Shown here one piece after another: positions 1 through 61,599 of a DNA stretch of 64,000 nucleotides. A program made the translations under genes and the position numbers. The notes beneath the pieces were generated by a model that saw only the letters and a program-made list of their open reading frames with translations, did not search any database and was not told the origin of the DNA. Within the stretch, counting starts at the first letter, position 1. The number at the start of each line of letters is the position of its first letter. This stretch comes from Cyanophora paradoxa CCMP329. Lineage: Eukaryota; Plantae; Glaucophyta. The stretch spans positions 10,072 to 74,071 of the forward strand of contig QPMI01000275.1 in NCBI GenBank assembly GCA_004431415.1, given 5' to 3'.

Positions 1-3000
1 ACTACACAATGATCGCCGAGACCGTCTCCTCCGTGCGCCCGCCCGCCCCGCCCGCCTCCGCCCCGCGCAGCCGTGGCCGAGCGGGCGGCAGCCGACGAGC
101 GGGACGCGGCGGATCGCACCGATGCCGGCGGACCTCTGCGCGGGGGTCGCCCTCGTGCTGCACGGCAACGCGGCGGCGGGCAGCTCGGGCCGGCGGGCCG
201 GCGTCGGCTACGGCGGCGTGCCGCGGAGCGTGGCGGTGGAGCTCGACTGCGGGCGGGACGCGGCGGCCGGCGACCCCGACGCCAACCACGCGAGCGTGCA
301 CCTTAACGGCGACCCCGCCGAGGGCCCCGCCCTCGCCCGGGCCTCCTGGGAGCCGGCGCCGTACCCCGGCTTCCCGCTGCGGGCCGCCGCCTCGGGGGCG
401 CCGGCCCTGCAGGACACGCCGGCGGGGGACTACCCGGGGCCCCACGCCGGCGTCGCCGACGGCGCCCTCGTCGCCCCGTTCCGCTGGACCGTGCGCGCGT
501 TCTCCTATTCGTCTCTTCTTTGTTATGACCAGATATGACCGCCTTCTTCAGGTGCCTTTCTTCAACTGGATGCCGAACGAGGAAGTGCTCCTCGTGACGC
601 AGAGCTTCACCCCTTTCCGATGCGGCTACCAGCTCGCCGGCAACCAGGCCCGTTAGCCACCCCGCGGCCCTTGCTCGGGTTTCGTTCTTGGCGGCTGACG
701 GGCGCGGGGCGCAGGTGGTGGTGACGTACCACGCGGTGGGGGGCGTGCTGACGGTCGACTTCAACGGGCGGCGCCTCCTCGCCGCCCCCGTCGACCTTGA
801 GGCCGCCCTCGGCTGTCCGCCCCCGCCCGCCCGCCCGCCCGCCCGCCCGCCCGCCCCGCCGCGCTTGACGGGCCGCAGCGCCGGCGGACGGGGCGATGTA
901 CGTCGGCCTCACGGCCGCCGTCCGCGGCACGGCCGACGCGAGCCGCGCGGGGACCACGTTCGCCGTCGACGCCACCCACTTCTCCGTCCTGTCGGGCGGT
1001 CCAAGCCGCCCGCCACCCGCCGTCCGCCCGTCTCTTCCCCCCTTTCTGACTAGGCGCCCCTTTCTTTTTCGGCGCAGGCAATTACTACGACGAGGCGGTG
1101 GACCCTCGGCCCTTCAACCTCGCGCCCCCCGTCGACGTCGTCCGCGGCCCGGCCGGCCCCGTCGCCGCCGGCGCGCCCGTCACCCTCACCGTCGCCCGCT
1201 CCCTTCTCTACCGGGTCCGTCCTTGCAAATCTTTTATGATTACACGGTCTCTTCTAACTTTTCTTGTTTTCGTCTTCTTAGGGCGCCGACTGGAGCTGGT
1301 CGACTCCCTCGGACGGCGATGGAAGCGCGCCGTCCCTCACGTACCGCTGCGTCGAAAGCTGCGCGCCGGGGGCGCCCTCGGCCCCTCAGCGGGCGGCGCT
1401 CTCGGCCTCCCCCGGCGCCCGCGGGGCCTACTCGGCCGACCTCGGCGCCCTCCCGCCCGGACGCTACCAGGCGCTTACCGCCGACTCCGCCGCCGAGTTC
1501 GAAGTCGCCGCCGGTCCGAACCTGAGCCTCACCTCACCTGAGCTCTGCCTGAGCTTCACCTGAACTCCGCCTTCGCCCAGGGGGCCGGCCGAGCGCGGCG
1601 GAGAGCTACGCTTTCCTTTCGGAGGCGCCGAAGGCCGCGACGTCCGTACCCCGGGTGCGATCGATTGAATGTAAAGTGGAGCTGCCCGGATTCGAACCGA
1701 CGCCGCTCGCTCTGCAGCGCATTGCGTTTGGTGTGGTGTGGCGGGACGCGGCGGGGGGCCTCGCGGCGCCCGACCCCTCCGCCCTCGCCGCCGCCCTCGA
1801 GGCCGACGGCGGCGGCCCGGCCCCGCCCCTCGCCGGCCCCCGCGCCTCCTCCCCTCCGGCCTCTACGAGGTACCCCCGCCCGCCCCGCGCCCGCGCCGCC
1901 CTGACGCCCGCGGCGGGTCGCGGCGGCGCTCCTGCGGGCGGCTTCGCGCTGCGGCTGAGCTACGGCGGCGCCGCGCTGCCCCGGGCCCCCTCCGCTTCTC
2001 CGTCGCCCCTACCCCTCCCCCTCCCTTCCCCTCCCCTCCGCGAGCCCCTCCCCTCCCATCCCCGGCGCCTCCTCGCCCCCGTCCCGACCCCCACCCCCGG
2101 CCCTCCCCGACCCCGCCCCCGGCTGGGAGGGCGCGCGCCCGTCGCTGGTCGCGTGCGGCGGCCCCGCGCCGCGCGCCCTCCCCGCGGCCGCCCCCAACTG
2201 CTCCTTCCCCGCCGGCGCCCCCGACCAGGCGCTCTGGGTCGCCCTCGCACCCCCCGAGGGAGTGTTCCCCCCTGCCGGCGCGGCGCCGGCTCTGCTCGCG
2301 GACGTCTCGTGCCACCCGCCTGAGCGGTCCCTCGTGAATCTTACACGCTTTTCTGTGTTCGAGGATGCGCCGCCGCCCTGGCCTCTCTACTGGGTACGCG
2401 TTCCTCTTCGTTCGCTTAAGCGTCCGCCCCCTTCCGACCCCCCCGCAGCTGGCACTCAACGCGACGGCGGCGGGCGCCTGCAACGCGACCGTCGGCGGCG
2501 CCGCCGGAGCGCCCCGCGGAGTTTTCTCGATTACTGTCCTCCCCGGTCCGCCCCGCCGTCCCTTAGATTTCAGGCGGGGCGCCGCCTGAGGGGGCGGCAG
2601 GCGCCGTGGACGCGCTGCGGTCGCGGCTGGAGGGGGGCGGGCCGGCCGCGCTGCCCCTCCTCCTCGCCGGCCCCGACGCCAACGCGTGCGCCCCGCCGCC
2701 GGCCCCGCGCGCCCCGCGCCCCTCAGCGGCCCGCAGGACGCTCCGCTTCTGCGCCGCCGACGCGTACGGCAACGCCGTCGCCCGCCGCTCGCCCCGCCGC
2801 TCGCCGCCGTGCTCGTCAACGCCTCCGCGGCGCGCCGCTGGCGGTGCCGGCGGAGGCGGAGGCGGCCGGCGGCTGCGCGCGGCTGCGCGTGCGGGCGCCG
2901 CGGGGCAGTACGCGCTGGAGCTGCGGCTCGGGGGCGCGCCGCTGCGGGCGCCGTGGCTGCCGCGCGGCGCCAGCGTCTTCGTGGACGGGCCGCCGTGCAG

Positions 3001-4615
3001 CACGCCGGCCCTCCTCTGCCCGACTGGTCCTGCGCCCCCGACCCCGCCGCCTGCGCCACCCGCCGCCTCTGCTTCGACGGCTCCGAGGCGGCCGACGGGC
3101 GCCCGTGCCCCGCGTGCGCGCCCCGCCGCCGGCCCCGCGCGGCCCGCCCGCTGACGGCGGCCGCAGCCGCCGTGGCTGCGGGCGGTGCGGGCGGCGGATT
3201 TGCCGCTCGTGTTCGGGCGCGGGCGACGGCGGAGGCGACGGCGGCCGACGCCTCCGGCGAGCCCCTCGCGCGCGTCGCTCTCTTCGGCGGCGGCGCAGCG
3301 GCGGCGGAGGCGGGGCGGCAGGGGCGGAGGCGATGGGGCCGGGGACGAGGCGCCGTTCGGGGCGCTGCGGGTGGGCCCCGGGCGGGGGCCGGGCCGGGGC
3401 GGCTCTCGGCGGCGGTGGCGCTGGCGCTGGCGGCGGCGGAGGGCGCGCCGCGCGGCCTCACCGGCGCGCTGCTCGCGCCGGCCCTCGGGCCCGTCGAAGT
3501 CGCCCTCCGCGCCGCCGTCCCGCCCGACGTGCGCCGCCCCGCCCCCGCCCTCGCGCCGCGCCGCGGGCGCTGAGTGGGCGGCAGGCGCGGGGGCGTGCGT
3601 GGCGCGGTGGAACGCGAGCAGCGGGGCGTGGGTGTGCGTGCCCGGCGGGACCCGCTTCGAGCCGGACGCGGCGGGGCGGCGCGGCGGGCGGCGCGGGCGC
3701 TGGCGCCGGGCTGGCGCGTCGGGTGGTTCGCGGCGGCCGTGACCCTCGCGGAGCCCCTCACGCTCGCCCTCGTCGCGCTGCCCGCCCCGGGCCCAGCCCG
3801 CCCCCGCCCCCGTCCCCGTCCCCGTCCCCGGCCGAGACCCCTTTCCTGTCCCCGTCACCGACCCCGTCACCATCCCCGTCTCCGGCCGCGGGGCCCTTGC
3901 CGTCGCCCGGCGCGGGGAATGGGACGGAGGCGCGGAACGCGAGCGGCCCGCGGCCGTGCGCGGGCGGCGCCGGCGCGAATCCCACCACCGACTGCGGCGC
4001 CGGCGACCCTCCGCCTCTGCAGGGTCCGCGCGCACTCGTTTTGCTTCGTTTGTTTCGCGAGCGGCCGCCGCAGCGGACGTGCGCGCATCGGAGCCGGCGA
4101 CGCCGGGCGGCGGCGGCGGCGGGGCGGCGGCGGGCGGCGTGCTGGGCACAGCGGCGGCGGTGGCGGCGCTGGCGTGCGTGGCGGCGGCGCGGCGGCGGCG
4201 GGCGCGGCGGGCGCGGCGCGAGTACGAGAGCCTGCTGGTGCGCGGGCCGGGGCCGGGCGCGGGCGGGCGCGGGCGCAGGGCGGGCGCGAGCCGGGGCGGC
4301 GCAGCGGGAGGACCTGGACGCGGCGGCCGGCGGCGACGGGGCGGCCGAGGAGCACTGGGCCCCAACGCCCTCGCCGCCCGCGCCCGCCGCCCCGCGCCGG
4401 CAGAGGCGAGGGGGGCGGAGGGGGCGCGGGAGGGGCCGCCCGCCCCGTCCGAGGCGGGCGATCGCGAGGGGCCGGCGGGGGCGGCGGAGTGGGAGCCGAA
4501 CCCATCGTACCCTTCCGGGGACGGCGGCGGGGAGGGCGGGGAGGGCTCCTGGGAGGGCAACCCGTCCTACCCGCCCCGCGCGGGGACCGCTACCCCTCGG
4601 GAAGCCCCGTCCTGA
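1..4615 (+). CDS. Multi-exon type-I membrane protein, 5'-truncated by the window edge: L-type (legume-like) lectin domain, filamin/Ig-like repeats, Pro/Ser stalk, TM helix and acidic cytoplasmic tail (copy 1)
   Basis: Exon peptides GVALVLHGN...GVGYGGVPRSVAVELDCGRDAAAGDPDANHASVHLNG and YVGLTAAV (L-lectin-like). GGFALRLSYGGAALPPGPLRFSV and GQYALELRLGGAPL (filamin-like). SPSPSP stalk at 3800-3900, then TM GGVLGTAAAVAALACVAAA followed by RRRRARR. Stop TGA at 4613-4615. Colinear with the inverted paralogue at 26291-31004. Confidence 0.8.
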
Positions 4616-23325: not shown

Positions 23326-25630
23326 ATGGCGCCAAACGCAGTAGCGCTCCCCACAATTGTCACAGTAGACAGCTTGGAGCCGCAGCTGAAGCCGAAAGGG
23401 ACGATGGCGCCCGAAGTCGACGCCGGCCTGTACTCCGGCGGCCTTCCAGCACCAGCCGCAGCTGCCGAGCCGAAGAAGTATAAGCTCCCGACCAATGCCG
23501 ATGGCAAGGCCACCACGTACAACCTCCTCTCCTTCGCCCAGCCACACAGTGAGCCCACGGCCGCGCTGCCCGTACGCGTCGGCGCCGCGATGCCGACGCT
23601 GACCGGGCCGCCCGCAGTGCGCGCGCTGTGGTGGGAGACGATCGCTTTCTTCGTGTGCTTCAACGCGTGGTTTGCCATCCCTGCGGTCAGCCCCTCGCCC
23701 CGGCCCGCACCTGCCGGCGCCCGCGCCGCGGCCGCTGACGGGCGGCGCCGCAGATGGCGACGACGATCCGCAAGGACATGGGCTTCACGCCGGCGCAGAT
23801 GGCCGACGCCAACTCGATCGGCGTCGCCGGGACCATCCTGTCCCGCATCGTGATGGGCGTCGTCTGCGACAAGGCGAGCCGCCGCCCGCCCCGCCCCGCC
23901 CCGCCCCGCCCCGCCTCGGCGGGCCTGACCGGCGCTGCAGTTCGGGCCGCGCTACGGGCAGGGCTTCGTTCTCTTCTTCGGCGGCATTCCCGTCGCGCTC
24001 GCCGGCCTCGCCACGTCGTACAGCGGCTACGTCGCCGTCCGCTGGTTCATCTCCTTCGTGCGCCCCCCGCGCCCGCCGCCCGCCGCCCTCCGAGGCTCAC
24101 GCTTGCTGCCCGCAGATCGGCGCCGCCTTCGTGCCGACGCAGTACCACAGTGCGCCGGGCGCCGCGCCGCGCTGCCGGCGGCCGCAGCCGCGGGGCGCTG
24201 ACGCGGCGGCGCGCAGTGTCATTCATGTTCGCGAAGAACGTGGTGGGCGAGGTGAACGCGCTCTCGGCCGGCTGGGGCAACATGGGCGGCGGCACCACGC
24301 ACCTCCTCATGCCCGTCATCATGAACTCATTCTCCAACTACGGCTACACCCCGCACATGTGCGCCGCGCCCCGGCCGCACCGCGCTCGGCCCGGCCGACG
24401 CTCCGTGCGGCGCAGGCAGTGGCGCCTGACGATGATCATCCCCGGCGTGGTGGCGATCGTGACGGGCATCTGCGTGATCCTGTTCACGCGCGACCTGCCG
24501 GAGGGGAACTACCGCGAACTGCAGAAGAAGGGCCTTAAGCAGAAGGTCGACACGAAGGCGGCGGTCAAGATCGCGCTGTCGGACTACCGCACCTACATCT
24601 TCGCCCTCAACTACGCCGTCTGCTTCGGCATCGAACTCACCATCGACAGGTCAGGCGCCCGCGCCTCGCCCCGCCCGCCCTCCCGCCGCGCGGCGCTGAC
24701 GCCGGCGGGCGCGCAGCACGTTTCCCGAGTTCTACGCGGACCACTTCAAGTTCGACAAGGTGCAGGCGGGGGCGGCGGCGTCGGCGTTCGGCCTCATGAA
24801 CATCTTCTCGCGCTGGTCCGGCGGCAAGCTCTCCGACATCTGCGCCAAGCGCTGGGGCATGCGCGGCCGCCTCTGGCTCATGTGGCTTGGCATCGTCTTG
24901 GAGGGCGTCTTCCTCGTCATCTTCGCCCGGATGGAGAACGTCGTCGCCTCGTTCTTCTTCATGCTCATCTTCTCGTACTGGTGCCAGGTGCGGACCGCCC
25001 CCGCCCCCGCCCCTGCGCGGCGCTGTGGTCGCGGCGCGCCGACGCGCGGGGCGGCAGATGTCGTGCGGGACGACGTTCGGCTGCGTGCCGTACCTCAACC
25101 CCAAGGGCCTGGGCGCGGCGTCGGGCCTGATCGGGGCGGGGGGCAACGCCGGGGCCATCTTGACGCTGCAGCTCTTCAAGCCGCTGAGCTACATGGACGC
25201 GTACACGGTCCTCGGCTGCTTCGTCTTCATCGTCCCCTTCTCGCTCGCCTTCGTCAGCTACCCCGAGCTCGGCGGCGCCTCGATGTGGAACTCGGGCGGC
25301 TTCGTCCGCGGCCGCCCCGAGGTGCCCCACGCGCCCATCGACGCGTCGAGCGTCGCCGGGTCCTCGGTGCACATGAACGGCGAGTGGAGCATAGCCAAGG
25401 GCGACGTGTGGAGCACGCACTCGGGCGCCGCGTTTATGTCCTCGCCCGACGGCGTGGCCCTCAACCACCGCGCCGGGTTCCCCGCCGCCGGCGATTCGGT
25501 CCGCAAGGGAACCGTGTACCCCGCGGCGGCCGACGCGCCGGCCCACGGACAGCCGCCGGCCGCGCCCGTTGCGATGTCGGCGCCGGTCGCCGCCGCGCCC
25601 GCCGCGATGGCGGCGCCTTCGCTCCAATAG
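23326..25630 (+). CDS. NRT2: High-affinity nitrate transporter NRT2 (MFS, NNP family), copy 1, multi-exon
   Basis: [117 protein letters not shown]. Stop TAG at 25630. Confidence 0.96.
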
Positions 25631-26290: not shown

Positions 26291-29200
26291 TCAGGACGGG
26301 GCCTCCAGAGGGGTCGCGGCCCCCGCGGGGGGCGGGTAGGACGGGTTGCCCTCCCAGGAGCCCTCCCCGTCCTCGCCGCCGCCGGCCCCGGAGGGGTACG
26401 ACGGGTTCGGCTCCCACTCCGGCGCCCCCGCCGGCCCATCGCGATCGCCGGCCTCGGACGGGGCGGGTGGCCCCTCCCGCGCCGCCGCCCCCGCCGCCTC
26501 CCCCGCCTCGCGATCGGCCGCCGCGGGGCGGCGGGCGCGGGCGGCGAGGGCGTTGGGGGCCCAGTGCTCCTCGTCCGCCCCGTCGCCGCCGGCCGCCGCG
26601 TCCAGGTCCTCCCGCTGCGCCGCCCCCGCTCGCGCCCGCCCCGCGCCCCGCCCCGGCCCCGCGCGCGCCCCCGGCCCGCGCACCAGCAGGCTCTCGTACT
26701 CGCGCCGCGCCCGCCGCGCCCGCCGCCGCCGCGCCGCCGCCACACACGCCACCGCCGCCACCGCCGCCGCCGCGCCCAGCACGCCGCCCGCCGCCGCCCC
26801 GCCGCCGCCGCCGCCGCCCCGTGCCGCCGACTCCGACACGCGCACGTCCGCTGCAGGGGCCGCTCGCGAAACACACGAAGCGAAACGAGCGCGCGCGGAC
26901 CGTGCAGGGGCGGAGGGTCGCTGGCACCGCAGTCGGTGGAATTCGCGCCGGCGCCGCCCGCGCACGGGCCGCTCGCGTTCCGCGCCTCCGTCCCGTTCGC
27001 CGCGCCAGGCGACGGCGAGGGCCCCGCGGCCAGGGACGGCTCCGAGGACGGGGATGGTGACGGGGAAGGGGGCGGGGACGGGGAAGGGGTCTCGGCCGGG
27101 GGCGGGGACGGGGACGGGGACGGGGACGGGGTTGGGCTGGGCCCCGGGGCGGGCGGCGCGACGAGGGCGAGCGTGAGGGGCTCCGCGAGGGTCACGGCCG
27201 CCGCGAACCACCCGACGCGCCAGCCCGGCGCCAGCGCCCGCGCCGCCCGCCGCGCCGCCCCCGCCGCGTCCGGCTCGAAGCGGGTCCCGCCGGGCACGCA
27301 CACCCACGCCCCGCTGCTCGCGTTCCACCGCGCCACGCACGCCCCCGCCGCCTGCCGCCCACTCAGCGCCCGCGGCGCGGCGCGAGGGGCGGGGGCGTGG
27401 ACGGGGGCGGCACACGTCGGGCGGGGCGGCGGCGCGGAGGGCGACTTCGACGGGCCCGAGGGCCGGCGCGAGCAGCGCGCCCGTGAGGCCGCGCGGCGCG
27501 CCCTCCGCCGCCGCCAGCGCCAGCGCCACCGCCGCCGAGAGCCGCCCCGCCCCGCCTCCCGCCCCGGGCCCACCCGCAGCGCCCCGAACGGCGCCTCGTC
27601 CCCGGCCCCCATCGCCTCCGCCCCCGCCGCCTCCGCCTCTGCCGCCTCCGCCGCCTCTGCCGCCTCTGCCGCCGCAGCGCCGCCGAAGAGAGCGACGCGT
27701 GCGAGGGGCTCGCCGGAGGCGTCGGCCGCCGCCGCCTGCGCCGTCGCCCCGCGCCCGAACACGAGCGGCAGCTCCGCCGCCCGCACCGCCCGCAGCCACG
27801 GCGGCTGCGGCCGGCGTCAGCGGGGCGGGCCGCGCGGGGCCGGCGGCGGGGCGCGCACGCGGGGGCACGGGCGCCCGTCGGCCGCCTCGGAGCCGTCGAA
27901 GCAGAGGCGGCGGGCGGCGCAGGCGGCGGGGTCGGGGGCGCAGGACCAGTCGGGGCAGAGGAGGGCCGGCGCGCTGCACGGCGGCCCGTCCACGAAGACG
28001 CTGGGGCCGCGCGGCAGCCACGGCGCCCGCAGCGGCGCGCCCCGAGCCGCAGCTCCAGCGCGTACTGCCCCGCGGCGCCCGCACGAGCAGCTGCGTGCAG
28101 CCGCCGGCCGCCTCCGCCTCCGCCGGCACCGCCAGCGTCGCGCCGCCGGAGGCGTTGACGAGCGCGGCGGCGAGCGGCGGGGCGAGCGGCGGGGCGACGG
28201 CGTTGCCGAACGCGTCGGCCGCGCAGAAGCGGAGCGTCCTGCGGGGCCGCTGAGGGGCGCGGGGCGCGCGGGGCCGGCGGCGGGGCTTACGCGTTGGCGT
28301 CGGGGCCGGCGAGGAGGATGGGCAGCGCGGCCGGCCCGCCCCCCTCCAGCCGCGACCGCAGCGCGTCCACGGGGCCTGCCGCCCCCTCAGGCGGGCCGCC
28401 AGTGCGCTCGGGAGGGGCGGCGGGCCGTACCGGGGAGGACAGTAATCGAGAAAACTCCGAGGGGCGCTCCGGCGGCGCCGCCGACGGTCGCGTTGCAGGC
28501 GCCCGCCGCCGTCGCGTTGAGCGACAGCTGCGGGGGGCCGGTGTCAGGAGGGGTGGCCTCCTGGACGAACGGAGGGAAACGCGTACCCGGAAGAGGGGTA
28601 AGGACAGACGAGGCGAGTCCACAACGAAGATCCGCGTGAGGTTGATGAGGGACCGCTCGGGCGGGTGGCAGGAGACGTCCGCGTGCAGAGCCGGCGCCGC
28701 GTCGGCCGGGGGGAGCATTCCCTCGGGGGGTACAAGGGCGACCCAGAGCGCCTGGTCGGGGGCGCCGGCGGGGAAGGAGCAGTTGGGGGCCGCCGCGGGG
28801 AGGGCCCGCGGCGCGGGGCCGCCGCACGCGACCAGCAACAAGCGCGCGCCCTCCCAGCCGGGGGCGGGGTCGGGGAGGGGCCGGGGTGGGGGACGGGGAC
28901 GGGGGCGTGGAGGGCGCCGGGGAGGGGAGGGGGAGGGGCTGGCGGAGGGGAGGGGGACGGGGAGGGGAGGGGGTAGGGGCCACGGAGAACCGGAGGGGGC
29001 CCGGGGGCAGCTCGGCGCCGCCGTAGCTCAGCCGCAGCGCGAAGCCGCCCGCCGGCATCGCCGCCGCGACCCGCCGCGGGCGTCAGGGCGGCTGAGGGCG
29101 GGGTGCGGGGCGGGCGGGGGTACCTCGTAGAGGCCGGAAGGGAGGAGGCGCGGGGGGCCGGCGAGGGGCGGGGCGGGGCCGCCGCCGTCGGCCTCGAGGG

Positions 29201-32200
29201 CGGCGGCGAGGGCGGAGGGGTCGGGCGCCGCGGGGCCGCCCGCCGCGTCCCGCCAAACCACACCGAACGCGATGCGCTGCAGAGCGAACGGCGTCAGAAT
29301 GAAGAAATTGAGCCCGTTACGGCATCAAGTGCTAGTTTCACTTTGAACTACATCTTACGCGTAGAAGCCGACGCACCGCGGGGCCAGGGACGAACGACGC
29401 GGCCGCGAGGAAGGCGCCGGAGGCTTCCGCGCTGGGTCCCGCTGCGGCCGAGGGGGCGTGAGCGAGGGCCGGGGGGGAAGGCCGGAGGCCCCCGGGGGGG
29501 TACCGTGCGCGACGGCGAAGGTGGCCGAGGAGTTGGCGCTGATCGCCTCGTAAAGGCCCGGCGCGAGGGCGCCGAGGTGGGCCGAGTAGGCCCCGCGGGC
29601 CCCCGAGGGCGAGAGCGCCGCCCGCTGAGGGGCGGAGGGCGCCCCCGGCGCGCAGCTTTCGACGCAGCGGTACGTGAGGAACGGGGTTGCCCCGTCGACG
29701 GCGGGTACTGGAAAGCTCCAGGTCCAGCCGCTCCCCTTCAGAGCAAAGTGAGGGGAAGCGAAAAGGATGAAAATGGGGCGGCGAGCGGTGCAGCGCACCC
29801 GGTAGAGAAGGGAGCGGGCGACGGTGAGGGTGACGGGCGCGCCGGCGGCGACGGGGCCGGGCGGGCCGCGGACGACGTCGGTGGGGGGCTGGAAGTTCGG
29901 GGGGTACGGGAACCGCATCTGCTCGAAGTAGTGTCCTGCGGCGGGCTGAGAGAGAAGGCGGGGTAGCGTGATTGGAAGCGGGAGGCAGAGGGGACCTGCG
30001 GTTAGGACGGAGAAGTGGGTCGCGTCGACGGCGAAGGTGGTCCCCGCGCGGCTCGCGTCGGGCGTGCCGCGGACGGCGGCGGTGAGGCCGACGTACATCG
30101 CCCCGTCCGCCGGCGCTGCGGCCCGTCAGGCGCGGCGGGGCGGGGCGGGCGGGCGGGCGGGCGGGCGGGGCGGACAGCCGAGGGCGGCCTCCAGGTCGAT
30201 TGGGGCGGCGAGGAGGCGCCGCCCGTTGAAGTCCACCGTCAGCACGCCCCCCACCGCGTGGTACGTCACCACCACCTGCGCCCACGCGCCCGTCAGCCGC
30301 CAAGAATGAAACCCGAGCGAGGGCCGCGGGGTGGCTAACGGGCCTGGTTGCCGGCGAGCTGGTAGCGGCACGGGCTCCGGGCCTCGCTGTAGGTGCTCCA
30401 CAGAAAGTCGCCCATCGCCGAGCGCGTCACGTCGTACCGTCCCGCCTGCGCGCGGGGCGCTCGAGGCTAGGCGGGCGGGTCGGGCAGAGGCAGGAGCAAA
30501 GCGGCGCGCACCGCCGACACGAAAGGGGCGACGAGGGCGCCGTCGGCGACGCCGGCGTCGGGCCCCGGGTAGTCCCCCGCCGGCGTGTCCGGAAGGGCCG
30601 GCGCCCCCGAGGCGGCGGCCCGCAGCGGGAAGCCGGGGTACGGCGCGGGCTCCCACGAGGCGCGGGCGAGGGCGGGGCCCTCGGCGGGGTCCCCGTTAAG
30701 GTGCACGCTCGCGTGGTTGGCGTCGGGGTCGCCGGCCGCCGCGTCCCGCCCGCAGTCGAGCTCGACGGCCACGCTCCGCGGCACGCCGCCGTAGCCGACG
30801 CCGGCGCCGCCGGCCCCGAGCTGCGCCGCCGCCGCGTTGCCGTGCAGCACGAGGGCGACCCCCGCGCAGAGGTCCGCCGGCATCGGTGCGATCCGCCGCG
30901 TCCCGCTCGTCGGCTGCCGCGCGCTCGGCCGCGGCTACGCGGGGCGGGGCGGGGCGGGGCGGGCGGGCGCACCGAGGAGACCGTCTCGGCGATCATTGTG
31001 TAGTTGAAGACGACCTGTGCGCGCGCCGTCAGGCCGCCGGCGAGGCCCCGGCGGCCCGGGGCGGGCGGGCGGGCGGGCCTGGAAGCCGCGGCGGAAGGGG
31101 ACGCGCTGCGCGAAGAACATCGACCCGGCCGCCCCCGCCGCCGTCCCCGCCGTCCGGACAACCGCCACTCGAGCGAGCCCGGGATCCGACCCGGAGCCGT
31201 ACACGTCCAAGGCGCCTGAGGCGAGATTTCGTCCGAATTCGATCGCTTTTCGAACTGAGATTTGATCGCCGCGCACCGGTCTGACTCGCGATGGGCCCCG
31301 AAAAGGCGCCGGGGGTAGAGGAGAAAACGAGATCCTGGAGCTACCCAACGAGTTACAGGGGTACATGTCCAGGCCTCCGGGGGGGTTCATGCTCACGGCG
31401 GGGGCCAGGGAGGTGTTGGAGAAGGGGCGGAAGCAGCCCGTGGAGTAGCGGACGTTGGCGAGGGGGGGTACCGCGTGCGGCACGCACCAGAGGCGGCTGT
31501 GTAGCGTGCGCCGGCAGCCGCCGCGCTGGCCCGGGTTCCAGCCGCCCCGCAGGGGCACGGCCTCCTCGCTGCAGGCCGTGTCGAGCGCCGCCGTCGCCCG
31601 CACCCGCACCGTCTGCGCCCGGCGCACTTAGGGGCGCGGGGCGCGGGTCGCGGGGGGCGGGGGGCGGACGGCGTTGGGGCGAAGGGCCCGCCGGCGACGA
31701 GGAGGGCCTCGGCGGGGCGGCCCCCGCGGCCCACAGCGGCGGCGCGCCGGCGAGCGCCGCGCCCCGCAGGCCGAGCGTCACGCGGAAGGCCGCCCCGCCG
31801 GCGCCGCGTCCAGCAGCAGCGGCCCGCCCCCCGCCGCCCGCCCCGCCTGCCGCCGCTGTCAGGGCGGCGCCCCGGGGCGGGGCGGGGCGGGCGGGGGCGG
31901 CGGACGGGGCCGGCGAGGGCGACGGCGATGCCGCGCGGGTCGCTGGCGACGCGGACGGCGACGCCGGCGCCGGGCGCGCCGCGCGTGGCCGCCACTGCCG
32001 CCAGCAGCGCCCCCGCCTCGCCCGCCCCTCCAGCGGCCCCGCCGCCGACCCGAAGCCCCACGGCGGCGGCCCCGCCCCGGGCCCCGCCGCCATCACCACC
32101 GGCCACACGCCCCGCGCCCGCAACCCCTCCGCCCCCGCCCCCCTGCGCCCCGGCCCCCTCAGCCCCGCCCCGCCGCGCCCCGCCGCGCCCCGCGCCGCGC

Positions 32201-33061
32201 ACACGCCGCCGCGCCGGCCTGCCGCGGGGTCAGTGCGGCCAGGCGCCGCACGGGCGGGCGCCGGCGGGCCGCACCGTGCCGGGGAAGCCGTCGAATCGGA
32301 TGACGAGGAGGCGGCGGGCCCCCGCCCGCCACGGCGCGCGCGCCGCCTCGCTGCGCGGCGTCAGCGGCGGCCGGCAGACTGCTCCGCGCCGGGCGCCGGG
32401 CGGCACCTGAGGACGTCTGCGGGGTCGGCGCTGCACGGGGCCGCCGCCGGCGCAACGGCGGCGGCCGCCTGCGCCACCTCCGCCGCCCCGCCGAAGGGCC
32501 GCAGGCCGAACACCGTCTCCAGCGCCTCTCCGCTCTGCCGTCGCCGTCGGCGCCGCGCGCGGGGCGGGCGTGCGGGCGGCGGGCGCACGCAGGCGGCGAG
32601 GCCGAAGCGCAGGTCGCCGTGGGCGGCGGCGAGGGCGCTCCAGTCGGCCGCGAGGCGCCCCGCCAGCGCCCCGCCGCCCGCCCAGTCGCCCGCGTTCGAC
32701 CGGTCGCTCACGAAGTGCACATCGAGCGGCACCTGCGCGCCCCGCCCGCCCCGCCGCGTTAGCTGCGGCCTCGCCGCTGGCCGCCGGCCGCGGGGCGCGC
32801 ACGGTGGGGTCGAGGGGGAGGAATCGGAACTCGACGTCGAGGTCCGCCCCGAGCGCCACCGCCAGCTCCGCCTGCAGCGAGCCCGGGCTCACCTCTCCCG
32901 CGTCCGGCCCCACCACCGTGACCGAGCTCGCCGGCGGGCACGCTGCGGCCCCTTCGAGTCAGCCATCGAGGCCGCCCAAACCTGGGCAGCACCAAAGGCT
33001 CACCGCTCCGTGCAGGGCTGAGCAGCGCGAGGAGCGCGAGGAGCAGGCGGAGGCGCCCCAT
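26291..33061 (-). CDS. Full-length copy 2 of the type-I membrane VWA-like / L-lectin / filamin-Ig surface protein, multi-exon
   Basis: Signal peptide MGRLRLLLALLALLSPARS at 33061. VPLDVHFVSDRS...DLRFGLAA (degenerate VWA/integrin-beta I-like). Cys-rich linker, then lectin domain (AGSMFFAQRVPFRRGFQ...SVAVELDC). Filamin-like repeats, SP stalk, TM and tail as in copy 1. Stop at 26291. Confidence 0.8.
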
Positions 33062-33285
33062 GATAGCGGGGCGTGCGGGGCGCAACATCGCAACACAGGT
33101 ACGCGGCGCATGCGGGGGCCTCGCTGGCGGGGCCGGGATGCGCTCATTTCGAGGACAAAAAAGCGGTTCGCGCCGAACTTCGCGGCTGGCGGGGGGTACG
33201 GGTTGCCGGAACTGTGCCGAGCGGAGCCGAACCAGAGACCGACGATCCATCGACCCCAAGGACAACAAGCGTCCCGGCCGAGCCG

Positions 33286-48480: not shown

Positions 48481-48831
48481 CGCCTCGACCGACAGCCCAG
48501 GAACAGACCGGCGATCGCAAGCAAGCGAACAGACGCGGGCGAGGTGCGAGAGGCCGCTCGACTCGCACGGCCCGCGCGGCTCATTGCGCGATTTCAACGC
48601 CCGCTGACCGCCGGGGCTGCAGACCTGCCGGGAGCAGCGAGCGATGTCGGGCTCCTCGACGAGACGGCGTGCGGGGAAACGGGCCCGCGTCGAAGAGCCA
48701 GCTGCGCCCGCGTCGTCGTCCCCGCCAGCTGCGGCAGCTCCGACGATCGATACGTTGCCGGACGCGGTGATGAGCGACGTCTTCAAGGTCCTCGGACCGC
48801 GGGCGAGCTGGCCCCTGCGCGGCGTGTGCAG
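48481..48831 (+). repeat. 351-bp near-identical duplicate (5' flank plus F-box exon) of 52327-52677
   Basis: Ungapped alignment at a constant offset of 3846, with about ten substitutions by eye. Similarity ends at the exon-1 splice donor. Confidence 0.93.
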
Positions 48832-51035
48832 GTGCGCGCAGCGCGCCAGCTCGCCGCCGCTGTGCGTCTTAGCTAAACACGCGACGGATGGCAGGAGGTG
48901 GCGGCGGATACTGGAGGAGACGGAGTGGGCCAGCATCGATATCGATATCGACCTCAACACCGAAAACGCTTCCTACTTCTGCACCGCTCTGCCGGAAAGG
49001 AAGCTGCGGCTCAGCGACGGCGCGAGCGTCCGCTTCCGCTCGCGCCTCGAGAACGTTTGGTTCGATGGGGTGCACCAGAACAACCAGTTCAGAGTGACTG
49101 CGGCGTTGCGTCTCCTCGTCGCCATCGGAAGCAGCCGCAGCGGCCGGGCGCAGCCTCGGCGCGTGAGCGTCGAATTCGACGGCGAAGGCGAAGCATTCAT
49201 CGACCACTACCCTTCCGCCAACGCCGACGTCGTCGCTTCGTTCTCCTCCTACCTGCTCGGCGTCCTGTGGGCGCTGGCGCCGCAGGACGGCGCCGCCAGC
49301 GGACTGGAGAGCCTCAGCGTCGGCTTCCAGTGGCGGCGCTCGCCCTGCGATCCCGAGGGCGATGAAGAGCCGGAGCTTGCAGATGTGCTCGACAAGCTGC
49401 CGGCCGGCGAGGCGCCGTGGCCGGCGGGCCCCGACCTGCAGGCCGGCCTTGCGCCCTTTCGCGGCCTGCTCTCCCTTGCCCTCGTCTTCGACGACGTCCT
49501 CATGGGCGTCAGCCGCGAGGCCGCGACGGTCATCGCCGCCACCTGCCCCCTCCTCCGCTCCGTCTCGGTCAGCCTCCGCCCCTTCCGCGAGTCGTCCAAC
49601 GGAGTGCTGGCGGCGCTCGCCCGCCTCGCGCACCTCGAGGAGCTGGTCTTGGAGTGGCCTGACGGCGACGTATGCCCCCGCTCGCACGCGTTCGACGCAG
49701 AGGCCGGCCTCACGGCGCTCGCGGACGGCCCCGCCGGCCAGAGCCTGCGCCGCGTCGCCGCCCGGAGCCTACAAACGATCGCTGCCGCCAGCACAGCGCC
49801 CCCGCTGGCGTGCGCAATCCCGTCTGCAATACGCCCGGCTCCCGTCTCGAGCCCGCTGACGCCCGCCCGCGCCGGGCGCGCGCAGACCCGTCGCGTTCCC
49901 GACTCGATACGAGGACTGCGACTTCGAGCCGATCGCGCTGAGCGACGGCGTCCTTTGCGCGCTGGGCCGCATGCCTCGCCTCGAGTACGTCGAAGGCCTG
50001 AGGGTCCGTCCGCCTGGAAGTCTCCGGCGCCGCCTCGCCGCCCCCGCCGTCTGAATCTTCGCAGATCCGCGCGGACGAGGCGGGGCGCGCCGCCGCCGTC
50101 GCGCTCGGCCGCCTCGCGGGCCTGCGGGAGGCGCGCCTGGTGTTCAGAGCCGACAGCGAGGGCCAGGCCCAAGCTAGTGCCGCCCTGCGCGCCCTGGCCG
50201 AGACCGTCGCTGCGCTCCCGCGCCTGGAGGTCCTCGGCATGAGTCTCTCGGGTGCGCAGAGCTGCGCTGCGCGCCCGCCCTACAGGCGCGCCCCCTCATC
50301 CGCGCGCTCTTCGGCGGCAGCGGGGATCTCGAGCACGGGATCGGATGCGATCGTCGAGTTCCTCGCCAGCGCCGGCGTGCGGCGCGCCCTCACCGGCGTC
50401 CGCGTCGCGTTTCGTATGCACGACCTGGCGCGCGCGCGCGAGTTCGCGGCGGCCCTCTCCGGCCTGCCCCGCCTCGCGCGGCTGAGCCTCTATCTCTCCG
50501 GTGAGACGAAGCTCCTCGCCTCGCGCCGCTCCCGCCGCGCGCTTAAGCTTACGCCGCGCCTTGCATGAAACGCAGGCCCTCCGGATCCGGACGCGGCGGC
50601 TCTGATCGGAAGCGCGCACGTCGCCGCTGTGCTTGGGAGCCCCGGCGCGCGGCGCGCCCTCACGACGCTGTAACTCTCCATCGGCCGGCCTCTGACGGAG
50701 GCCGACGCGGAGGCGATCTTGGCGCTCCCGGCCCTCGAGCGCCTCGAGCTGTTCCTCGCGCTGTACGGGAGCGCGCCTGCCGAGACTCCCGTCCCTCTCC
50801 ACCCGTTCGAGGTGCCTTCCTGCCAGCCGGCCCCGCCCCGCCCCGTTAGCTTGCCTGGTCGCCCGCCCCGCCCCTACCGACCAACCGTACCCCCCGGCAG
50901 GTCCTTCGGCACGGCCTGCGCCCCGAGGTCGAGCTGGTCGCCCGCCTGTTCCTCCCGCTGGGGCCCGGGTGCGAGGCCGCGAAGGAGGCCGTGCGGGGTC
51001 TCTTCGCCGGCCGCCCGTCGTCTTGGGTGATCTGA
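48644..51035 (+). CDS. F-box / LRR-like protein, paralogue D
   Basis: IDTLPDAVMSDVFKVLGPRASWPLRGVCR|RWRRILEETEW, LESLSVGF, TCPLLRSVSV, LPRLEVLGM, LPALERLEL. Stop at 51035. Confidence 0.85.
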
Positions 51036-51389: not shown

Positions 51390-52489
51390 AGGCCGCTGCC
51401 GATGTCCCGAAGGCAAGAGAGCTTCGGGGCCCGTCGGCCGCCGGCCCCCGAAGCGCGGGCCGGGGGTACCCGCATCGAGGGCGACGGTCCGATCCAGCCC
51501 GCAGAGCGCGCGGCGGCGGCCCGCGCGGGACCCACCATCGGATTCGCCGTCCTCGGAAGGGGCGGGAGGAGAAACAACGGGGTCCTGGGGCGAAGGTCGG
51601 CGGCGGGGTGCGAGGGGGGTACAGGATTTTTCTATGATTACCCACGGGGTGCGGCACACCGTTCGAACGGGAATGACGCTGAGATTCCGAATATCGTATT
51701 CAAATCCTCGGGCCTCCGAGCCGCCGGGGTGGACGGGTACAGGGGGAAAACTGGCCGAGCCGAGCGTCAGGTGGCGCGAGGCTGCCAGAGGGCGGCGGGG
51801 CGGCCTTGGAAACGCACCTGGAGCATCGGAAGGAAGAGTACAGCCCCGTTGCAATATGCTTAGCGATGAGTGTCGTGGAGTTGGCTGAAGCGTCCGCGGG
51901 GCGGCGCAGAGCGGCGGAATGCGGGTTTGTTTTCAAGCTGAAGTCGTCAATGCACCGAGACACGTCTCAGGAACTGCGCATGCGCGGGACCGTATGAGAG
52001 CCCTGGCCTTGCGGGGGGGCAAGCTAAGCGCGCCCGCGCCGCCCGCGCCCGCTAAGCGACGGGCCCACCGGCCATAGCGACACGAGCATGTGCGGACCAT
52101 CACCAGCAGAATAGGCCCGCCGCGAACCGGGCTCACGCGGCCTTGCGCGGCCTTGCGTGAGGGCAAGCGCACCCGCGCCGTCCGACGAGTCACGACGTAG
52201 ACGGGCACGTCGACTCTACGTTGCGACACGAGCATGCGCTGCACCTCGCGTAGCACGGTGTTGCATGCATATGGGGCCGGTTGGGGCCAGTTGGGTTTTT
52301 CCCGGGGTACGATTGCCGGCCAGCATCGCCTCGACCGGCAGCCCAGGAACAGACCGGCGATCGCCAGCAAGCGAACAGACGCGGGCGAGGTGCGAGAGGC
52401 CGCTCGACTCGCACGGCCCGCGCGGCTCATTGCGCGACTTCAACGCCCGCTGACCGCCGGGGCTGCAGACCTGCCGGCAGCCGCGAGCG

Positions 52490-54676
52490 ATGTCGGGCTC
52501 CTCGACGAGACGGCGTGCGGGGAAACGGGCCCGCGTCGAAGAGCCAGCTGCGCCCGCGTCGTCGTCCCCGCCAGCTGCGGCAGCTCCGACGATCGATACG
52601 TTGCCGGACGCGGTGATGAGCGACATCTTCAAGGTCCTCGGGCCGCGGGCAAGCTGGCCCCTGCGCGGCGTTTGCAGGTCCGCGTCGCCCCGTCCCTAAG
52701 AGCCGCGCGCGGCGCTTCTCAGCTAAGCATGCGGCGGATCACAGGCGGTGGCGAGGGCTGATCCAGGGCACGGAGTGGACGTGGTTCGAGCTGGGAGCAC
52801 CGGTCAAGCGCAAACCTGGGACCGCGGCGAGCTCGAGCCGCGCGTACGGGAAGACCCGAAAGCAAGCCGGGCGCGCTGACGGCGAGCAAGCGTACAGCGC
52901 CGTGGCGGCGCTCTTCGACCGGCGAGTCCGCAAGCTGCGGCTCGCCGCGGGCGCCACCGTAGTGCTCAGGCCCGAGCTCGCCGAGTTCGGAGGCGTGAGG
53001 GCGGCGCGGCAGGGCCACCGGCGCACCGTCGCGGCGGCGTGCAGCCTCCTCGCGGCCATCACCCGCAGCCACAGCGGCCCCGCGCAGCCGGGCCACGTGA
53101 TCGTCGAGCTCCGCGGCGTCGACGAGCTCTTCTCCTTCCGAGGGGAGTCCGACGAGTGCTTCCTGGAGGCGTACGTGCTGGGCGTCCTGCGGGCCCTGCG
53201 GCCGCCCGACGGCTCCGCCAGCGCCCTGGAGGGCCTCAGCATCGGCTTCACGTGCGACAGCAGCGACAGCGACATGTCCGACGAGCGCATGGCGTGGCCC
53301 GAGGCGGCCGGGCTGCGGGCCGCCCTCACGCCCTTCGGCCGGCTGCGGGCCCTCGACCTCTTCGCGCGCAACTCGTTCGGCCTCATGCCGGACGACGCGG
53401 CCGCCCTCGCCGCCGCCTGCCCCCTCCTGAAGACGCTCCTCCTCGTCCCGAGCTTCGACTACGCCCCGCGGGTGCTGGCCGCCCTCGCGCCCCTCGCGCA
53501 CCTCGAGGAGCTTGCCGTCGCCTGGCCGTCGGAAGAGGTCGCCCAGTCCTCGGGCGTCGGCGGCGGCCTCGCGGCCCTCGCCGGCGGCCCGGCCGGCAAG
53601 AGCCTCGCGCGGCTCGTCTTCTTCGAGGAGGCCGCCCTGTTCAGGTGAGCCCGAGCTTAGAACTTAGCTTGCACTTGGCTGGCTTCGAGCTTGCTGACGC
53701 TGCGGTGGTGCCAGGGGGCCCGGGGGCGAGTTCCCCCTCCCGTCGAGCTCCTCGGGCCTCCCGGACTTGGCCTACGCGCCCCTCGCGAGCGCCGACCTGC
53801 TCGCGCTGGGCCGCATGCCCCGCCTCGAGCTCTTCCTCCCCCTCTTCGTGCGCGCGAAGGCCCCTCGGAATCCGCATCTCCTGATGCAGTTCGTGCAGTT
53901 CGACCCGGACGCGGTGGAGCCCGAGGCGGTACGCGCCCTGGGCGGCATGGCGGGCCTCCGCCAGGCCGTCCTCTGGGTCGTCCACGGCTCCGACGCCGCC
54001 CGCGCCGCGGCCGCCCTGCGCGCCCTGGGGGAGGCCCTCTCCGACCTCCCCAGCGGGCCGGGCCTCGAGATCGGTCTGATCCTGCAGATGTGGGGTGCGC
54101 GGGCCGAGCCTTGCCTAGTCAGCCCTGGCGGCCTCGGCTTAGCTTTGCTCTACTCCGCGCAGGCCACCCCACGAGCTCCGAGATGGTCGCCGGCCTCCTG
54201 GGGAGCCCCGGCGCGCGGCGGGCCCTCACGGCGCTGAACCTGAACCTCCGCCGGCCGCTGGAGGAGGCCGACGCGGAGGCGGTCCTGGCCCTCCCCGCCC
54301 TCCAGCGCCTCGAGCTCAGCTGCGCGCTCGAGCCCCCCGCGTCCCCCGAATCCCTGCGCCCCTTCGAGGTGCGCGCGGCCAGCAACCCCAACCCTCCCCT
54401 CGGTCCCAAACCCGTCCTTCGAATTCCTTCGATCCCGAACGCGCCCTCCCTTCGACCCCGAACCCGCCGCCCGCCTTCGATCCCGGCCCGACACGCGCGC
54501 GGGGCGGCCAGGTCCTGGCCCGCCTTCGCCCCGAGGTTGCCGTGGCGGTCCGCCTGGGGCCCGACCGCGACCGCGGGGCGGGGCGCGCGGAGCTCGAGGG
54601 GGCCGCGCTGAGGGCGGCCGAGGCCGAGGTGCGGCGCCTCTTTGCGGGCGGCCGCGATAGCCGGCGCGTGTCATGA
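52490..54676 (+). CDS. F-box / LRR-like protein, paralogue E
   Basis: IDTLPDAVMSDIFKVLGPRASWPLRGVCR|RWRGLIQGTEW, LEGLSIGF, ACPLLKTLLL, LPALQRLEL. Stop at 54676. Confidence 0.85.
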
Positions 54677-56253: not shown

Positions 56254-56538
56254 GCGCCGGCGCCGGCGCTGGCGCCGGCGCCAGGCTCCGCCAGCACGGC
56301 CAGCTGCAGGCTGCAGCTGCAGCGGCGCGCACGTCGACAACTTGCTACTAGCCTATATATATAGCTACTAGCCTTGGACCACGCTCATCTCTTGAGTTTT
56401 CCGGCCGCGGTCCATCTTGCGTCCAGCTGCAGCCTGCAGCAGGCCTGGGGTCAGATTTCGAAGCGCGCGTGCATCCGAAGCAATCCCCCAGCCCAGTAGC
56501 AGCGCCCTATCTATCTTCTTTCGAATTCCCGGAGTCCG

Positions 56539-57859
56539 ATGGGCGCTACGATGTCTTCTTCCCAGCAAACGCGCATGAGCTCGAGGGTTTTCCCTTCCTC
56601 TCCGGAGCTCCCCTCGTCCGCTGCCGCAGCTGAGTGCAAGCTGATCGAAGTGGCGACCTCCGACTCCAGCCCCGTGAAGCAGCAGCCGCAGCCGTGCTCG
56701 CCTCCGCGGCCCCGGGAGCGTGCCGTGCGCGTCCATTTCGCTGTGGACGATGACGAGACGGATTCGAAGGCGAAGCCGGCCCCGGCCGACGCCCCCGAAC
56801 CCACCTGCAAGGTCCGAACCCGCGCGCGCGCCGGCCCTGACCTCCTGCACGTGCACGCGCGCGGCTGCCCGCGGCGCTCGCCTCACGCTCTCGCTCCCGG
56901 CAGGCGCAGTCTCCTTCTTGCCCTTCGATTTCGAGCGAGGAGGCGCAGTCGCAGGAGCTCGAGGCCCTTCTGAGCGAGGTCCGCCGGCGCCGGCCCGGCC
57001 CCGATATCGAGCCCCTCGAGCTCGCCCTGAACGCGATCGCCTCTCCTTCGCTCGCGCAGCTCTGGGCCGCGATCGTGAACGGCACCGCCAAGTCCGCCTC
57101 CTTCGTCTCCGCCGTCGATTTCGAGCACTACTCCGCATTCCACCTGGTGCGCCCCGGCCCCGGCCCGGCCTGGCCCGACTCCTCTCCCGCTCCCAGCACT
57201 AGTTCTCACCCCGCGCCCCGCCCCGCCCCGCGCAGGCCCTCTTCCGCGCGCTGCGGACGAAGTGGACGCGGGACGAGGCGGTGTCCCTGGCCCAGGCGGA
57301 CTGGCTGAGCGACTCGGTGCGGGAGGCGAGCGGGCAGTCGGTGGTCACGCGGCGGCACGTCCAGACGAGCCTCGTGAACCTGGCCCTGTGGTGGGCGTGC
57401 CCGGAGGACGGGGAGGCGCTGGAGCCGGCGGCGCGGGGCGCGTGGTGCCGCGACTTCCTCGCCGCGCTCCTCGCGTGCATCGGGCGCCGGGACGCGGCCT
57501 CCGGCGGCCTCGCCGTCGCGCCCTACCAGGAGGTCCCCGTCGGCTGCTGCGTGCGGGCCGCCCTCCGCCTCCGCAGGCGCATGCGCGCCGCCGCCGCCGC
57601 CTCGGACGGCTCCGACGGCGAGGCCTCCGACTCCTCCTCCGCCTCCTCCTCCGCCTCCTCCTCGTCCGCCAGCGAGCTCGAGCTCTCGTGGAGCGAGGCG
57701 GCGGCGCGGGCGATCCTCAGCAGCCTCGAGCGCCCGGACATGAAGGTCGAGGAGGGGCAGCGGCGCCTCTGGGACCGCACGCACCTCCGCCGCCACGCCC
57801 TCGCCAACCGCCTCCGCGGCCGCCTCCAGGCCGGCGCCGTCACGCTCCTCGACTTCTGA
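56539..57859 (+). CDS. Hypothetical three-exon protein (possible degenerate EF-hand-associated protist domain), intact copy
   Basis: ATG at 56539. Introns ~56812-56903 and ~57148-57235 join in frame: AVDFEHYSAFHL|ALFRALRTKWTRDEAVSLAQADWLSD...SLVNLALWW...RDFLAALLACI. Stop TGA at 57859. Confidence 0.65.
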
Positions 57860-58253
57860 GCGCGCCGGCCGGGCCCGGGCCCTCGAGGCTTGAAGTCGGG
57901 GCTCCCGCCCTTCGCGGCGGGAGGCCTCCTGTCCTAATAGCTATAGTATCGTTATCGTAACGTTTCCGAGTTAACAACCTTCGTGAATGATTTATAAAGC
58001 GCCAGCTTTGCGAGCTTCCGTAGTACGCTTAACTGATTTCACGCGTCTATAGCTAATTAAGTATACGTAATTATAATGTCCTGTAGCCTAGTAGCTACGA
58101 TATCACGATATCATGCAGGTTAAATATTAGACATGTATAGACGACTCGATATATGGCATAATGTTTCAACACTGCAGCTGCAGCCACGCATTCCAAGTAC
58201 TATGGTATTAATGAACGGAACAGGGACACTGCTGTCGCAATGGCCCTGTTGGA

Positions 58254-60462: not shown

Positions 60463-61599
60463 GCCGATTTGTCGTTCTCAAATTTTTATTCCGTGGGGAG
60501 GTTGAGGGGCTTTATTTATATATCATATAGCGCTAGCTATAGTATTCCGCGTCTTCCGCCTGTCATGATACTGGCACCCACTAGTACGTATACTGCCCCT
60601 CGCAGGCTCGCGTCTTCCCTCGGCCGCCGGGCCGCCGCCCCCGCGGCCGCCGGGCCGGCCGCGGCCGGCCCTCCGATTCTCGCCGGTTCCGCCGTAAGAG
60701 CTTAGCGTCGACGTCCCCTGCGCCTGATCATGATCATGATCATGAGCAGCGCCTCCCGCGTTCGAATTCACTTCCGGATCCGCGCGCGCGGTGCATGCCA
60801 TGATGTACATGTAGATATCACCATTCATGCCCCGCGCCGCGCGCGCGGCGCCGGCCGCGGCCGGGCCCGGCCGGCCCGCCGCCGGCGGCGGGCGCCGGGC
60901 GGCGGGCGCTCCGCGCGCGCCAGCTGCAGGCGCCGCCGCGCCGGCTCGCCGCCAGCCGCTGCGCGCCGGCGCCGGCGCCGCCGGCCGCGTGGGATAATTA
61001 AATGCGTATATACGAATATTTTTGCACATATATACCGAGGTACGTGGAGTACTAGCACCGTGTACAGCTACGAGCCTCCAAGGTATACACGTGGGGTACT
61101 TTTCAGAAGTACTAGTACTTGAAACTTGAAAAAAGAAATTTAATTGCCATCACTGCACTGTACATGTGCACGTGACTGCAGCGGTACGCCGGAACCGCGG
61201 CGGTACGGTGGCGGTACGGTGACGCCGGTACCTATTCCTTGTGTATCATTTGCAATATCATCAATTAGAAAACTTAAGCTTCAAGGTACGTGTTGGGAGC
61301 TCCCAGGCTCCTAGTACTGTGGTACGGAATGGCCGGGTATACTGCCTTCATGATCCGCTAGACGGCGCCGGCGCTGGCGCGCTGGCCGGCGGCACGCGCG
61401 CCGCGCGTCGACCAGACAGCTTGCGCTTTCTCTCATCAGATCACTTTCCAACTTGCGTATACGCAACTTCGAAAGTTCGTCCAGCAGGGCAGATCTAGAA
61501 GCGCGCATCGCATCGAACGCCGAAGCACAGTCAGCTTTCTCAGAGCCCAAGCAGCAGCTGCAACGCCCTATCTATCTTCTTTCGAATTCCCGGAGTCCG

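Follow-up and report, generated by a model that had tools for sequence, protein, structure and literature searches.

Locus and gene copies

The stretch of DNA analysed here, a 64-kb window from the glaucophyte alga Cyanophora paradoxa, is intron-dense and very rich in GC (0.54-0.82 per 2 kb) and carries one gene, coding for a lectin-like membrane protein, as two inverted copies, which were located by blastn and by tblastn of the annotated protein P0001. Copy 1 (1-4615, plus strand), delimited by blastn and by comparison with P0001, has its 5' end beyond the left edge of the window and corresponds to the annotated model P0001 itself (tig00001177_g7358.t1, 1633 amino acids (aa); EukProt EP00741 Cyanophora paradoxa). 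Copy 2 (33088-26291, minus strand), traced by tblastn of P0001, is complete, with its start codon at 33088 and the end of the encoded tail near 26294. The spacing between the inverted copies is approximately 21.7 kb (4615 to 26291). For the greater part the two are nearly identical, exons and introns included, and are interrupted by short, sharply bounded segments of very low identity, referred to below as patches. Coordinates of copy 1 are given on the plus strand and those of copy 2 on the minus strand.

The genome of C. paradoxa has 67.6% GC, on average 9.2 introns per gene and a mean intron of 86 bp; its PacBio assembly was corrected with Illumina reads, and its gene models were stated to be in need of manual curation (PMC6704402). 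Exon borders were assigned according to the reading frames and with the help of contigs of public sequencing runs placed on copy 2. It should be added that the run evidence consisted of contig pieces only, and that joints with sides of 20-24 nt, mostly spurious and of low complexity, were disregarded. The contigs of run X8 were unspliced and matched copy 2 without differences, and this run therefore behaves as DNA of the sequenced strain. An assembly artefact was considered as the source of the copy-2 patches and excluded, since these independent DNA contigs from 2012 match every copy-2 patch exactly.

Constant blocks and divergent patches

Alignment with blastn placed copy 1 on copy 2 in five blocks: 1-481 on 31004-30521 (95.9% identity), 617-990 on 30373-30004 (95.2%), 1124-1216 on 29889-29797 (96.8%), 1330-1488 on 29684-29529 (88%) and 1699-4615 on 29295-26291 (90.6%). 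No alignable sequence was found between these blocks. In the global alignment, identity fell at the patch edges from 0.93-1.00 to 0.17-0.5 inside one 30-nt step, and divergence along the gene was accordingly bimodal and not uniform. By class, the copies shared 96-99% identity in constant exons and 90-96% in constant introns, versus 32-59% in the exon parts of patches and 39-44% in patch introns. Substitutions within the constant blocks were fairly evenly distributed, at about 2-5%. Six patches were resolved in DNA, five of them of 107-267 bp and one, of about 30 bp, confined to an intron; a seventh lies upstream. The exon parts of all patches are in frame and stop-free in both copies. The preliminary description of this locus, made from the sequence alone, had reported two near-identical copies with an unalignable exon in the lectin domain, and both alignments bear this out.

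The constant part of the lectin core exon (92-481 in copy 1) is 96.7% identical to 30913-30521, and the exon start at 30913 in copy 2 is fixed by three run contigs. Patch 1, the segment originally flagged, follows at 482-620 and includes the last three codons of this exon (482-490), the intron 491-551 and the first 23 codons of the next exon (552-620). In copy 2 it extends over 30371-30520, taking in the exon end, the intron 30511-30446 and the 5' part of the exon 30445-30344. Identity between the copies is 0.32-0.44 here, and an X8 DNA contig (30337-30554) is identical to copy 2 across the patch. The exon resumes constancy at its 3' end (621-647 in copy 1), which is followed by the intron 648-714, 95.6% identical between copies. 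In agreement with the earlier claim, the exons 552-647 (96 nt, 32 aa) and 30344-30445 on the minus strand (102 nt, 34 aa) are both in frame and both end with C-x-YQLAGNQ.

Patch 2 (991-1136 in copy 1) comprises an exon end, the intron 999-1077 and the first 19 codons of the exon 1078-1214; its counterpart in copy 2 (29877-30003) includes a 60-nt in-frame intron, 29995-29936, and is overlapped by a run contig, 29798-29997. Patch 3 (1215-1335; aligned with 29679-29798 in copy 2) consists of the intron 1215-1281, with a GC content of 0.37, and the first 18 codons of the exon 1282-1513. The edge of patch 4 (1432-1698; aligned with 29296-29585) is graded: the exon tail 1432-1513 retains 74% identity, and 1514-1698 (41%) then holds an intron, a short exon that has diverged and the greater part of the intron after it, so that the patch takes in an entire small exon with both flanking introns. 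In copy 1, the patch-4 intron sequence at 1520-1560 is made of short repeated motifs of cctgagc and tcacct types and, by eye, resembles a product of serial micro-duplication. Patch 5 (2334-2449) covers the last 20 codons of the exon ending at 2393 and the intron 2394-2449; in copy 2 (28527-28646) a spliced run contig carries its exon part, 28587-28646, and skips its intron, 28528-28586. Patch 6 (about 2563-2592; 28413-28384 in copy 2) is a replacement of some 30 nt in the middle of an intron confirmed by run contigs, and has no coding part. The upstream patch (31335-31545 in copy 2, run contigs 31397-31612) was compared only with the copy-1 protein, at P0001 ~375-427, where alignment by eye revealed that Cys and Trp positions were kept and the remainder had diverged.

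The three other variable peptide pairs quoted in the preliminary description were correct as given; its list of patches was incomplete, and patch 4 with its whole small exon, the intron-only patch 6 and at least one upstream patch have now been added. All patches resolved in DNA overlap an intron. The idea that they are special in this respect was dropped, as such an overlap is near chance where exons measure 100-230 nt and introns some 60 nt.

A further difference was observed inside the otherwise identical lectin exon, where 170-198 and 30834-30803 differ by three 1-nt indels within 30 nt; the frame is restored, and this compensated frameshift results in a 7-residue difference (GSSGRR-type versus AQLGAGG-type).

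Transcripts, splicing and reading frames

Contigs of runs X1, X4 and X7 skip the introns 27805-27858, 28238-28289, 28375-28429, 28528-28586, 32535-32588 and approximately 30116-30175, hence these runs behave as RNA. The exon part of patch 5 in copy 2 was recovered without differences in a spliced contig of X4 (28587-28711), and patch 2 of copy 2 in the contig from X7, a spliced run. The copy-1 patches are spliced into the annotators' model, and all copy-1 patch peptides are contained in P0001. Variant letters in the run contigs placed on copy 2 were exact copy-1 letters in 14 cases out of 16, from which it follows that both copies are represented in the spliced runs. A third expressed variant, considered on the basis of these letters, was dropped, because of this 14/16 share and because k-mer contigs can switch between copies.

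The intron 648-714 (30343-30276 in copy 2) appears to be of the GC-AG type, with the donor CAG/GCCCGT; this assignment is drawn from the reading frame alone and is the only in-frame solution. For the adjoining intron, run contigs place a GT donor 3 nt downstream of an apparent GC donor. The 60-nt intron of patch 2 in copy 2 (29936-29995), in frame and stop-free, is present in the X7 contig, which suggests retention or unspliced RNA, and removal of the homologous 79-nt intron in copy 1 (999-1077) is needed to keep the frame. Downstream of the exon ending ...GLYE (the exon 9/10 junction; 29122-29056 in copy 2, 1871-1930 in copy 1), no canonical in-phase AG acceptor was found for the intron, and the annotated copy-1 model reads straight through.

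Inside exons, the copies differ in run length by 1 nt close to 1836 and 1979 (copy 1) and at 28067 (copy 2), and each of these differences breaks the frame of the other copy. They are either real frameshifts, amounting to partial pseudogenisation, or residual long-read errors; at 28067, the extra base was present in RNA contigs with copy-1 letters and absent from the X8 DNA contigs. The P0001 model reads through one frameshifted stretch. Moreover, its long stretches rich in Arg, Ala and Gly, at about 160-350 and 1130-1430, resemble GC-rich DNA translated in the wrong frame. Curation of the published model is probably needed.

Divergence rates and base composition

Codon statistics were derived from Nei-Gojobori counts, exon by exon. 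The constant set (325 codons) had 0.094 synonymous substitutions per synonymous site (dS) and 0.021 nonsynonymous substitutions per nonsynonymous site (dN), with an omega (dN/dS) of 0.22 and a proportion of synonymous differences (pS) of 0.088. For the patch set (85 codons), pS was 0.60, equivalent to a dS of about 1.2 that is saturated at the present GC content of third codon positions (GC3), the proportion of nonsynonymous differences (pN) was 0.47 and omega about 0.6. The dS of the patches was at least 13 times that of the constant blocks, which argues for a much older coalescence of the patches. Since patch synonymous sites and introns are saturated like the protein, the contrast does not come from fast protein evolution following a recent duplication; the patches either are far older in history than their flanks or were replaced. 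The exon edge 1432-1513 had an intermediate dS of 0.41, as expected where conversion tracts end variably.

Constant introns that are 90-96% identical, a dS of 0.094 and a GC3 of 0.97 fit gene conversion, possibly GC-biased, so that the homogenisation of constant regions proposed earlier holds in these data. GC3 was lower in the patches (0.81 in copy 1 and 0.87 in copy 2), as would fit a GC-biased conversion confined to the homogenised parts. The lower GC attributed to the patches was clear for the introns of copy 1 (0.37-0.68 in patches versus 0.75-0.92 in constant parts) and weaker in copy 2, where patch introns had 0.59-0.75. The aromatic richness noted previously was also found, with fractions of 0.10-0.25 in patches versus 0.05-0.06 in constant parts.

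Patches 2, 3 and 5 retained amino-acid homology between copies when compared with shuffled sequences (z 5.5-6.1, with 6.1 for patch 2), and therefore represent the same ancestral segments rather than foreign filler. Patch 1 had no such residual similarity (z -0.45). Its dN was close to dS (omega about 1.0), and with dS saturated this is not demonstrably above 1. In patch 2, dN was 0.66 versus a dS of 0.34 (omega 1.9), on approximately 3 synonymous changes only. For the patches overall, dN/dS did not exceed 1.

These figures bear on the possibility that local mutation around introns has been accelerated since a recent duplication, with error-prone repair scrambling short stretches via small insertions, duplications and substitutions. 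The equality of dN and dS in patch 1, the intron overlap of every patch, the seemingly repetitive make-up of copy-1 patch introns (by eye, as at 1520-1560) and the small replaced stretches seen in other duplicates of the window (see below) would all be in line with such a process. However, the coding portions of patches 2 and 5 are free of indels and show simple substitutions only (24/59 and 28/60 sites, respectively), the patch edges are abrupt rather than graded, and the intron overlap is near chance given the short exons. We consequently regard this explanation as improbable.

Donor sequences, family size and other duplicates

The exhaustive search with the lectin exon returned one close protein, P0001, as the only match below 1e-30; the next proteins had about 40% identity over about 60 residues, and the two named among the top ten were bacterial. 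Protein word searches (with the lectin exon and with P0001 480-1000), together with this exhaustive search, revealed no family members other than P0001, a result that is weak since the protein collection lacks even copy 2. The preliminary description had spoken of a candidate family of receptors; with two copies known and no others found, a family is not shown. Furthermore, tblastn with the peptides of patch-bearing exons detected no silent donor cassettes in the 64-kb window, the weak matches being low-complexity noise. Patch 1 had no donor in this window, and the other patch-bearing exons strongly matched only the two copies.

The same results concern a scenario of recent duplication, at approximately 5% divergence, after which short segments would have been overwritten from distant paralogues elsewhere, in a kind of ectopic, cassette-like conversion. 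It would account for the even divergence of the constant blocks, which is similar to that of other duplicates in the window, for the sharp edges of the patches and for patch 4, where a whole exon is replaced together with both flanking introns. Speaking against it are the missing patch-1 donor and the exclusive match of the remaining patch exons to the two copies, the failure to find a further family protein (weak, for the reason given) and the variant letters, of which all but two are of copy-1 type, with no sign of a third expressed copy. In our assessment this course of events is quite unlikely.

Bounded variable segments in a constant framework are likewise found in trypanosome variant surface glycoproteins (VSG), Borrelia vlsE and chicken immunoglobulin (Ig) pseudo-V genes. 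In contrast to these systems, the window yielded no silent donor array, Cyanophora has two known copies, both of them expressed genes, and its patches include introns and are spread over several domains. That directed conversion swaps exon-plus-intron cassettes among Cyanophora lectin receptors, with the two copies being states of a larger repertoire elsewhere in the genome, we hold to be very improbable.

It should also be added that the window contains more duplicated segments with 92-94% identity: 23468-25539 (plus) and 43038-40943 (minus), 56499-58212 and 61560-63282, and 48481-48903 and 52327-52753. Among these other duplicates, short replaced stretches occur as well, for example at 23553-23581 and 25342-25385, and are smaller than the patches of the lectin gene. 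It may be a general feature of this region that duplicates diverge in patches.

Protein architecture and placement of the patches

The protein has the layout of a type-I membrane protein, with a signal peptide, an L-type lectin fold, beta-rich repeats, a Ser/Pro stalk, a transmembrane helix and a tail. In the cytoplasmic tail (4490-4612 in copy 1, 26294-26420 in copy 2), an acidic stretch rich in Gly and Glu carries two NPSY motifs of the NPxY type, which could, by their sequence, be sorting or adaptor-binding signals. The Pfam thresholds were not reached for the lectin domain (15-23 bits versus a cutoff of 78.3 for PF18483; 10.5 versus 26.3 for PF00139). The AlphaFold2 (AF2) model had a predicted local distance difference test (pLDDT) score of 80-94 in the lectin core, and a Foldseek search with it returned legume/L-type lectins as all top matches, including PDB 7elv (E 3e-10, template modelling score 0.74). 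Consistently, a profile from the alignment of P0001:420-790 with 67 homologous domains (68 sequences) matched the solved legume-lectin domain of 7elv at 5e-45. No filamin, Ig or VWA domains were found in P0001 by Pfam, the label "filamin-like" being based on motifs by eye only, and the beta-rich repeats had no Pfam match.

The domain thus resembles known L-type lectins (PF18483/PF00139, 7elv, concanavalin A) in its predicted beta-sandwich jelly-roll fold and in the G-Y, E-x-D, D-P and H columns, which are invariant or nearly so across the 68 sequences: G126, Y127, E137, D139 and H153 are invariant and D148 is at least 90% conserved, and all of them are identical in both copies. It differs in the sub-threshold Pfam scores, in the replacement, by eye, of the usual Asn of the calcium/sugar loop by Asp, and in two lineage-specific insertions of about 11 aa and 52 aa. 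The lectin motifs, namely the A-D loop, the G-Y loop, the metal loop E-x-D...D-P...H and the loop before the last strand, are located in constant blocks, with the A-D loop, the G-Y loop and the E/D/D/H metal-loop motif carried by 92-481 of copy 1. The canonical lectin loops and metal ligands are alike in both copies, the one exception being a residue of the loop that precedes the last strand.

Patch 1, the sole patch resolved at the DNA level within the lectin fold, corresponds to P0001 637-662 and lies within the 52-residue insertion (616-667), which is present in none of the 67 homologues and is poorly modelled (pLDDT <50). According to the profile alignment, the insertion sits at the turn of a conserved L-x-D-G hairpin. 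Patch 2 forms the linker after the last lectin strand, and patches 3-5 fall in the following beta-rich repeats.

Such a distribution is relevant to the suggestion that selection keeps the islands different as the ligand-contacting surface of a recognition receptor, with conversion homogenising the remainder. A number of features agree with it: the aromatic-rich composition of the patches, their consistently open frames with coding-type GC3 (0.81-0.87) beside introns of GC 0.37-0.68, the representation of both copies in spliced runs, the excess of dN in patch 2 and the Cys/Trp scaffold kept in the upstream patch while the rest changes. Moreover, the hairpin turn bearing patch 1 presumably lies on the sugar-loop end of the sandwich, a position that we assume from strand parity with concanavalin A, combined with the profile alignment. 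On the other hand, both copies have the same canonical binding loops and metal ligands, the patches are scattered over several domains and linkers, one of them being purely intronic, the overall dN/dS is only about 0.6 and dS is saturated, the excess in patch 2 depends on approximately 3 synonymous changes, the model of patch 1 is of low confidence, and two copies only are known. On balance, maintenance of the islands by selection appears unlikely. The preliminary description had proposed ligand-contacting loops diversifying in the manner of immune receptors; with constant canonical loops, dispersed patches, a dN/dS of about 0.6 (about 1 in patch 1) and saturation of silent sites and introns, the reading as an immune-type variable receptor is not supported by the present evidence.

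Origin of the patches

To our mind, there is a somewhat better than even chance that the two genes are old inverted duplicates homogenised by inter-copy gene conversion, in which certain islands escaped, are now too diverged to convert and are situated at change-tolerant sites of the protein. Inverted nearby copies are prone to intrachromosomal conversion. Conversion between the inverted paralogues would keep most of the gene about 96% alike, while six or seven short islands would have remained outside homogenisation and drifted to saturation, in exons and introns alike. The islands would then persist as they are too unlike to pair, with conversion tracts stopping there or with mismatch repair skipping them. 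They would be located where the protein tolerates change, that is in the inserted loop, linkers and domain edges. A functional difference between the two proteins is possible under this model, yet would not be required for the pattern. In accordance with such conversion, introns are as similar as exons in the homogenised blocks, and both synonymous and intronic divergence in the islands is far above that of the flanks. Patch 6, being wholly intronic, indicates that protein-level selection is not needed for every patch, and the short replaced stretches in other duplicates of the window were counted in favour of conversion as well.

Several points weigh against this explanation. Two sequences, taken by themselves, would not distinguish conversion from recent duplication with overwriting of patches. 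The even divergence of about 2-5% in the constant blocks, along with the 92-96% identity of other duplicates in the window, could reflect one recent burst of duplication. Patch 1, for which amino-acid similarity was not detectable, could be a non-homologous replacement. Finally, the 1-nt frame-breaking differences leave the intactness of both proteins in doubt.

Concerted evolution with conversion-resistant islands is known from primate red/green opsins, RHD/RHCE and paralogues of the major histocompatibility complex (MHC). As in these cases, the Cyanophora paralogues are for the most part nearly identical, in introns as well as in exons, contain short segments of much older divergence and are enriched in GC in the homogenised parts. 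Unlike them, the islands in Cyanophora are fully saturated, include whole introns and number six or seven within approximately 3.5 kb; the host, furthermore, is a glaucophyte alga, for which no report of such a pattern was found. Gene conversion is not mentioned in the C. paradoxa genome paper (PMC6704402). The mechanism looks like one of a known kind, i.e. patchy gene conversion between old duplicates.

Implications

With respect to annotation, our data call for caution, since duplicates in a GC-rich, intron-dense genome can differ in short coding cassettes and their models need curation. The pattern by itself does not demonstrate a variable immune-type receptor in an alga. It does provide a gene pair of about 5 kb in which the divergence of introns and synonymous sites is either about 4% or complete, and in which GC3 and intron GC follow the homogenised parts. 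The pair is therefore well suited to the study of gene conversion between paralogues, possibly GC-biased, in a glaucophyte.

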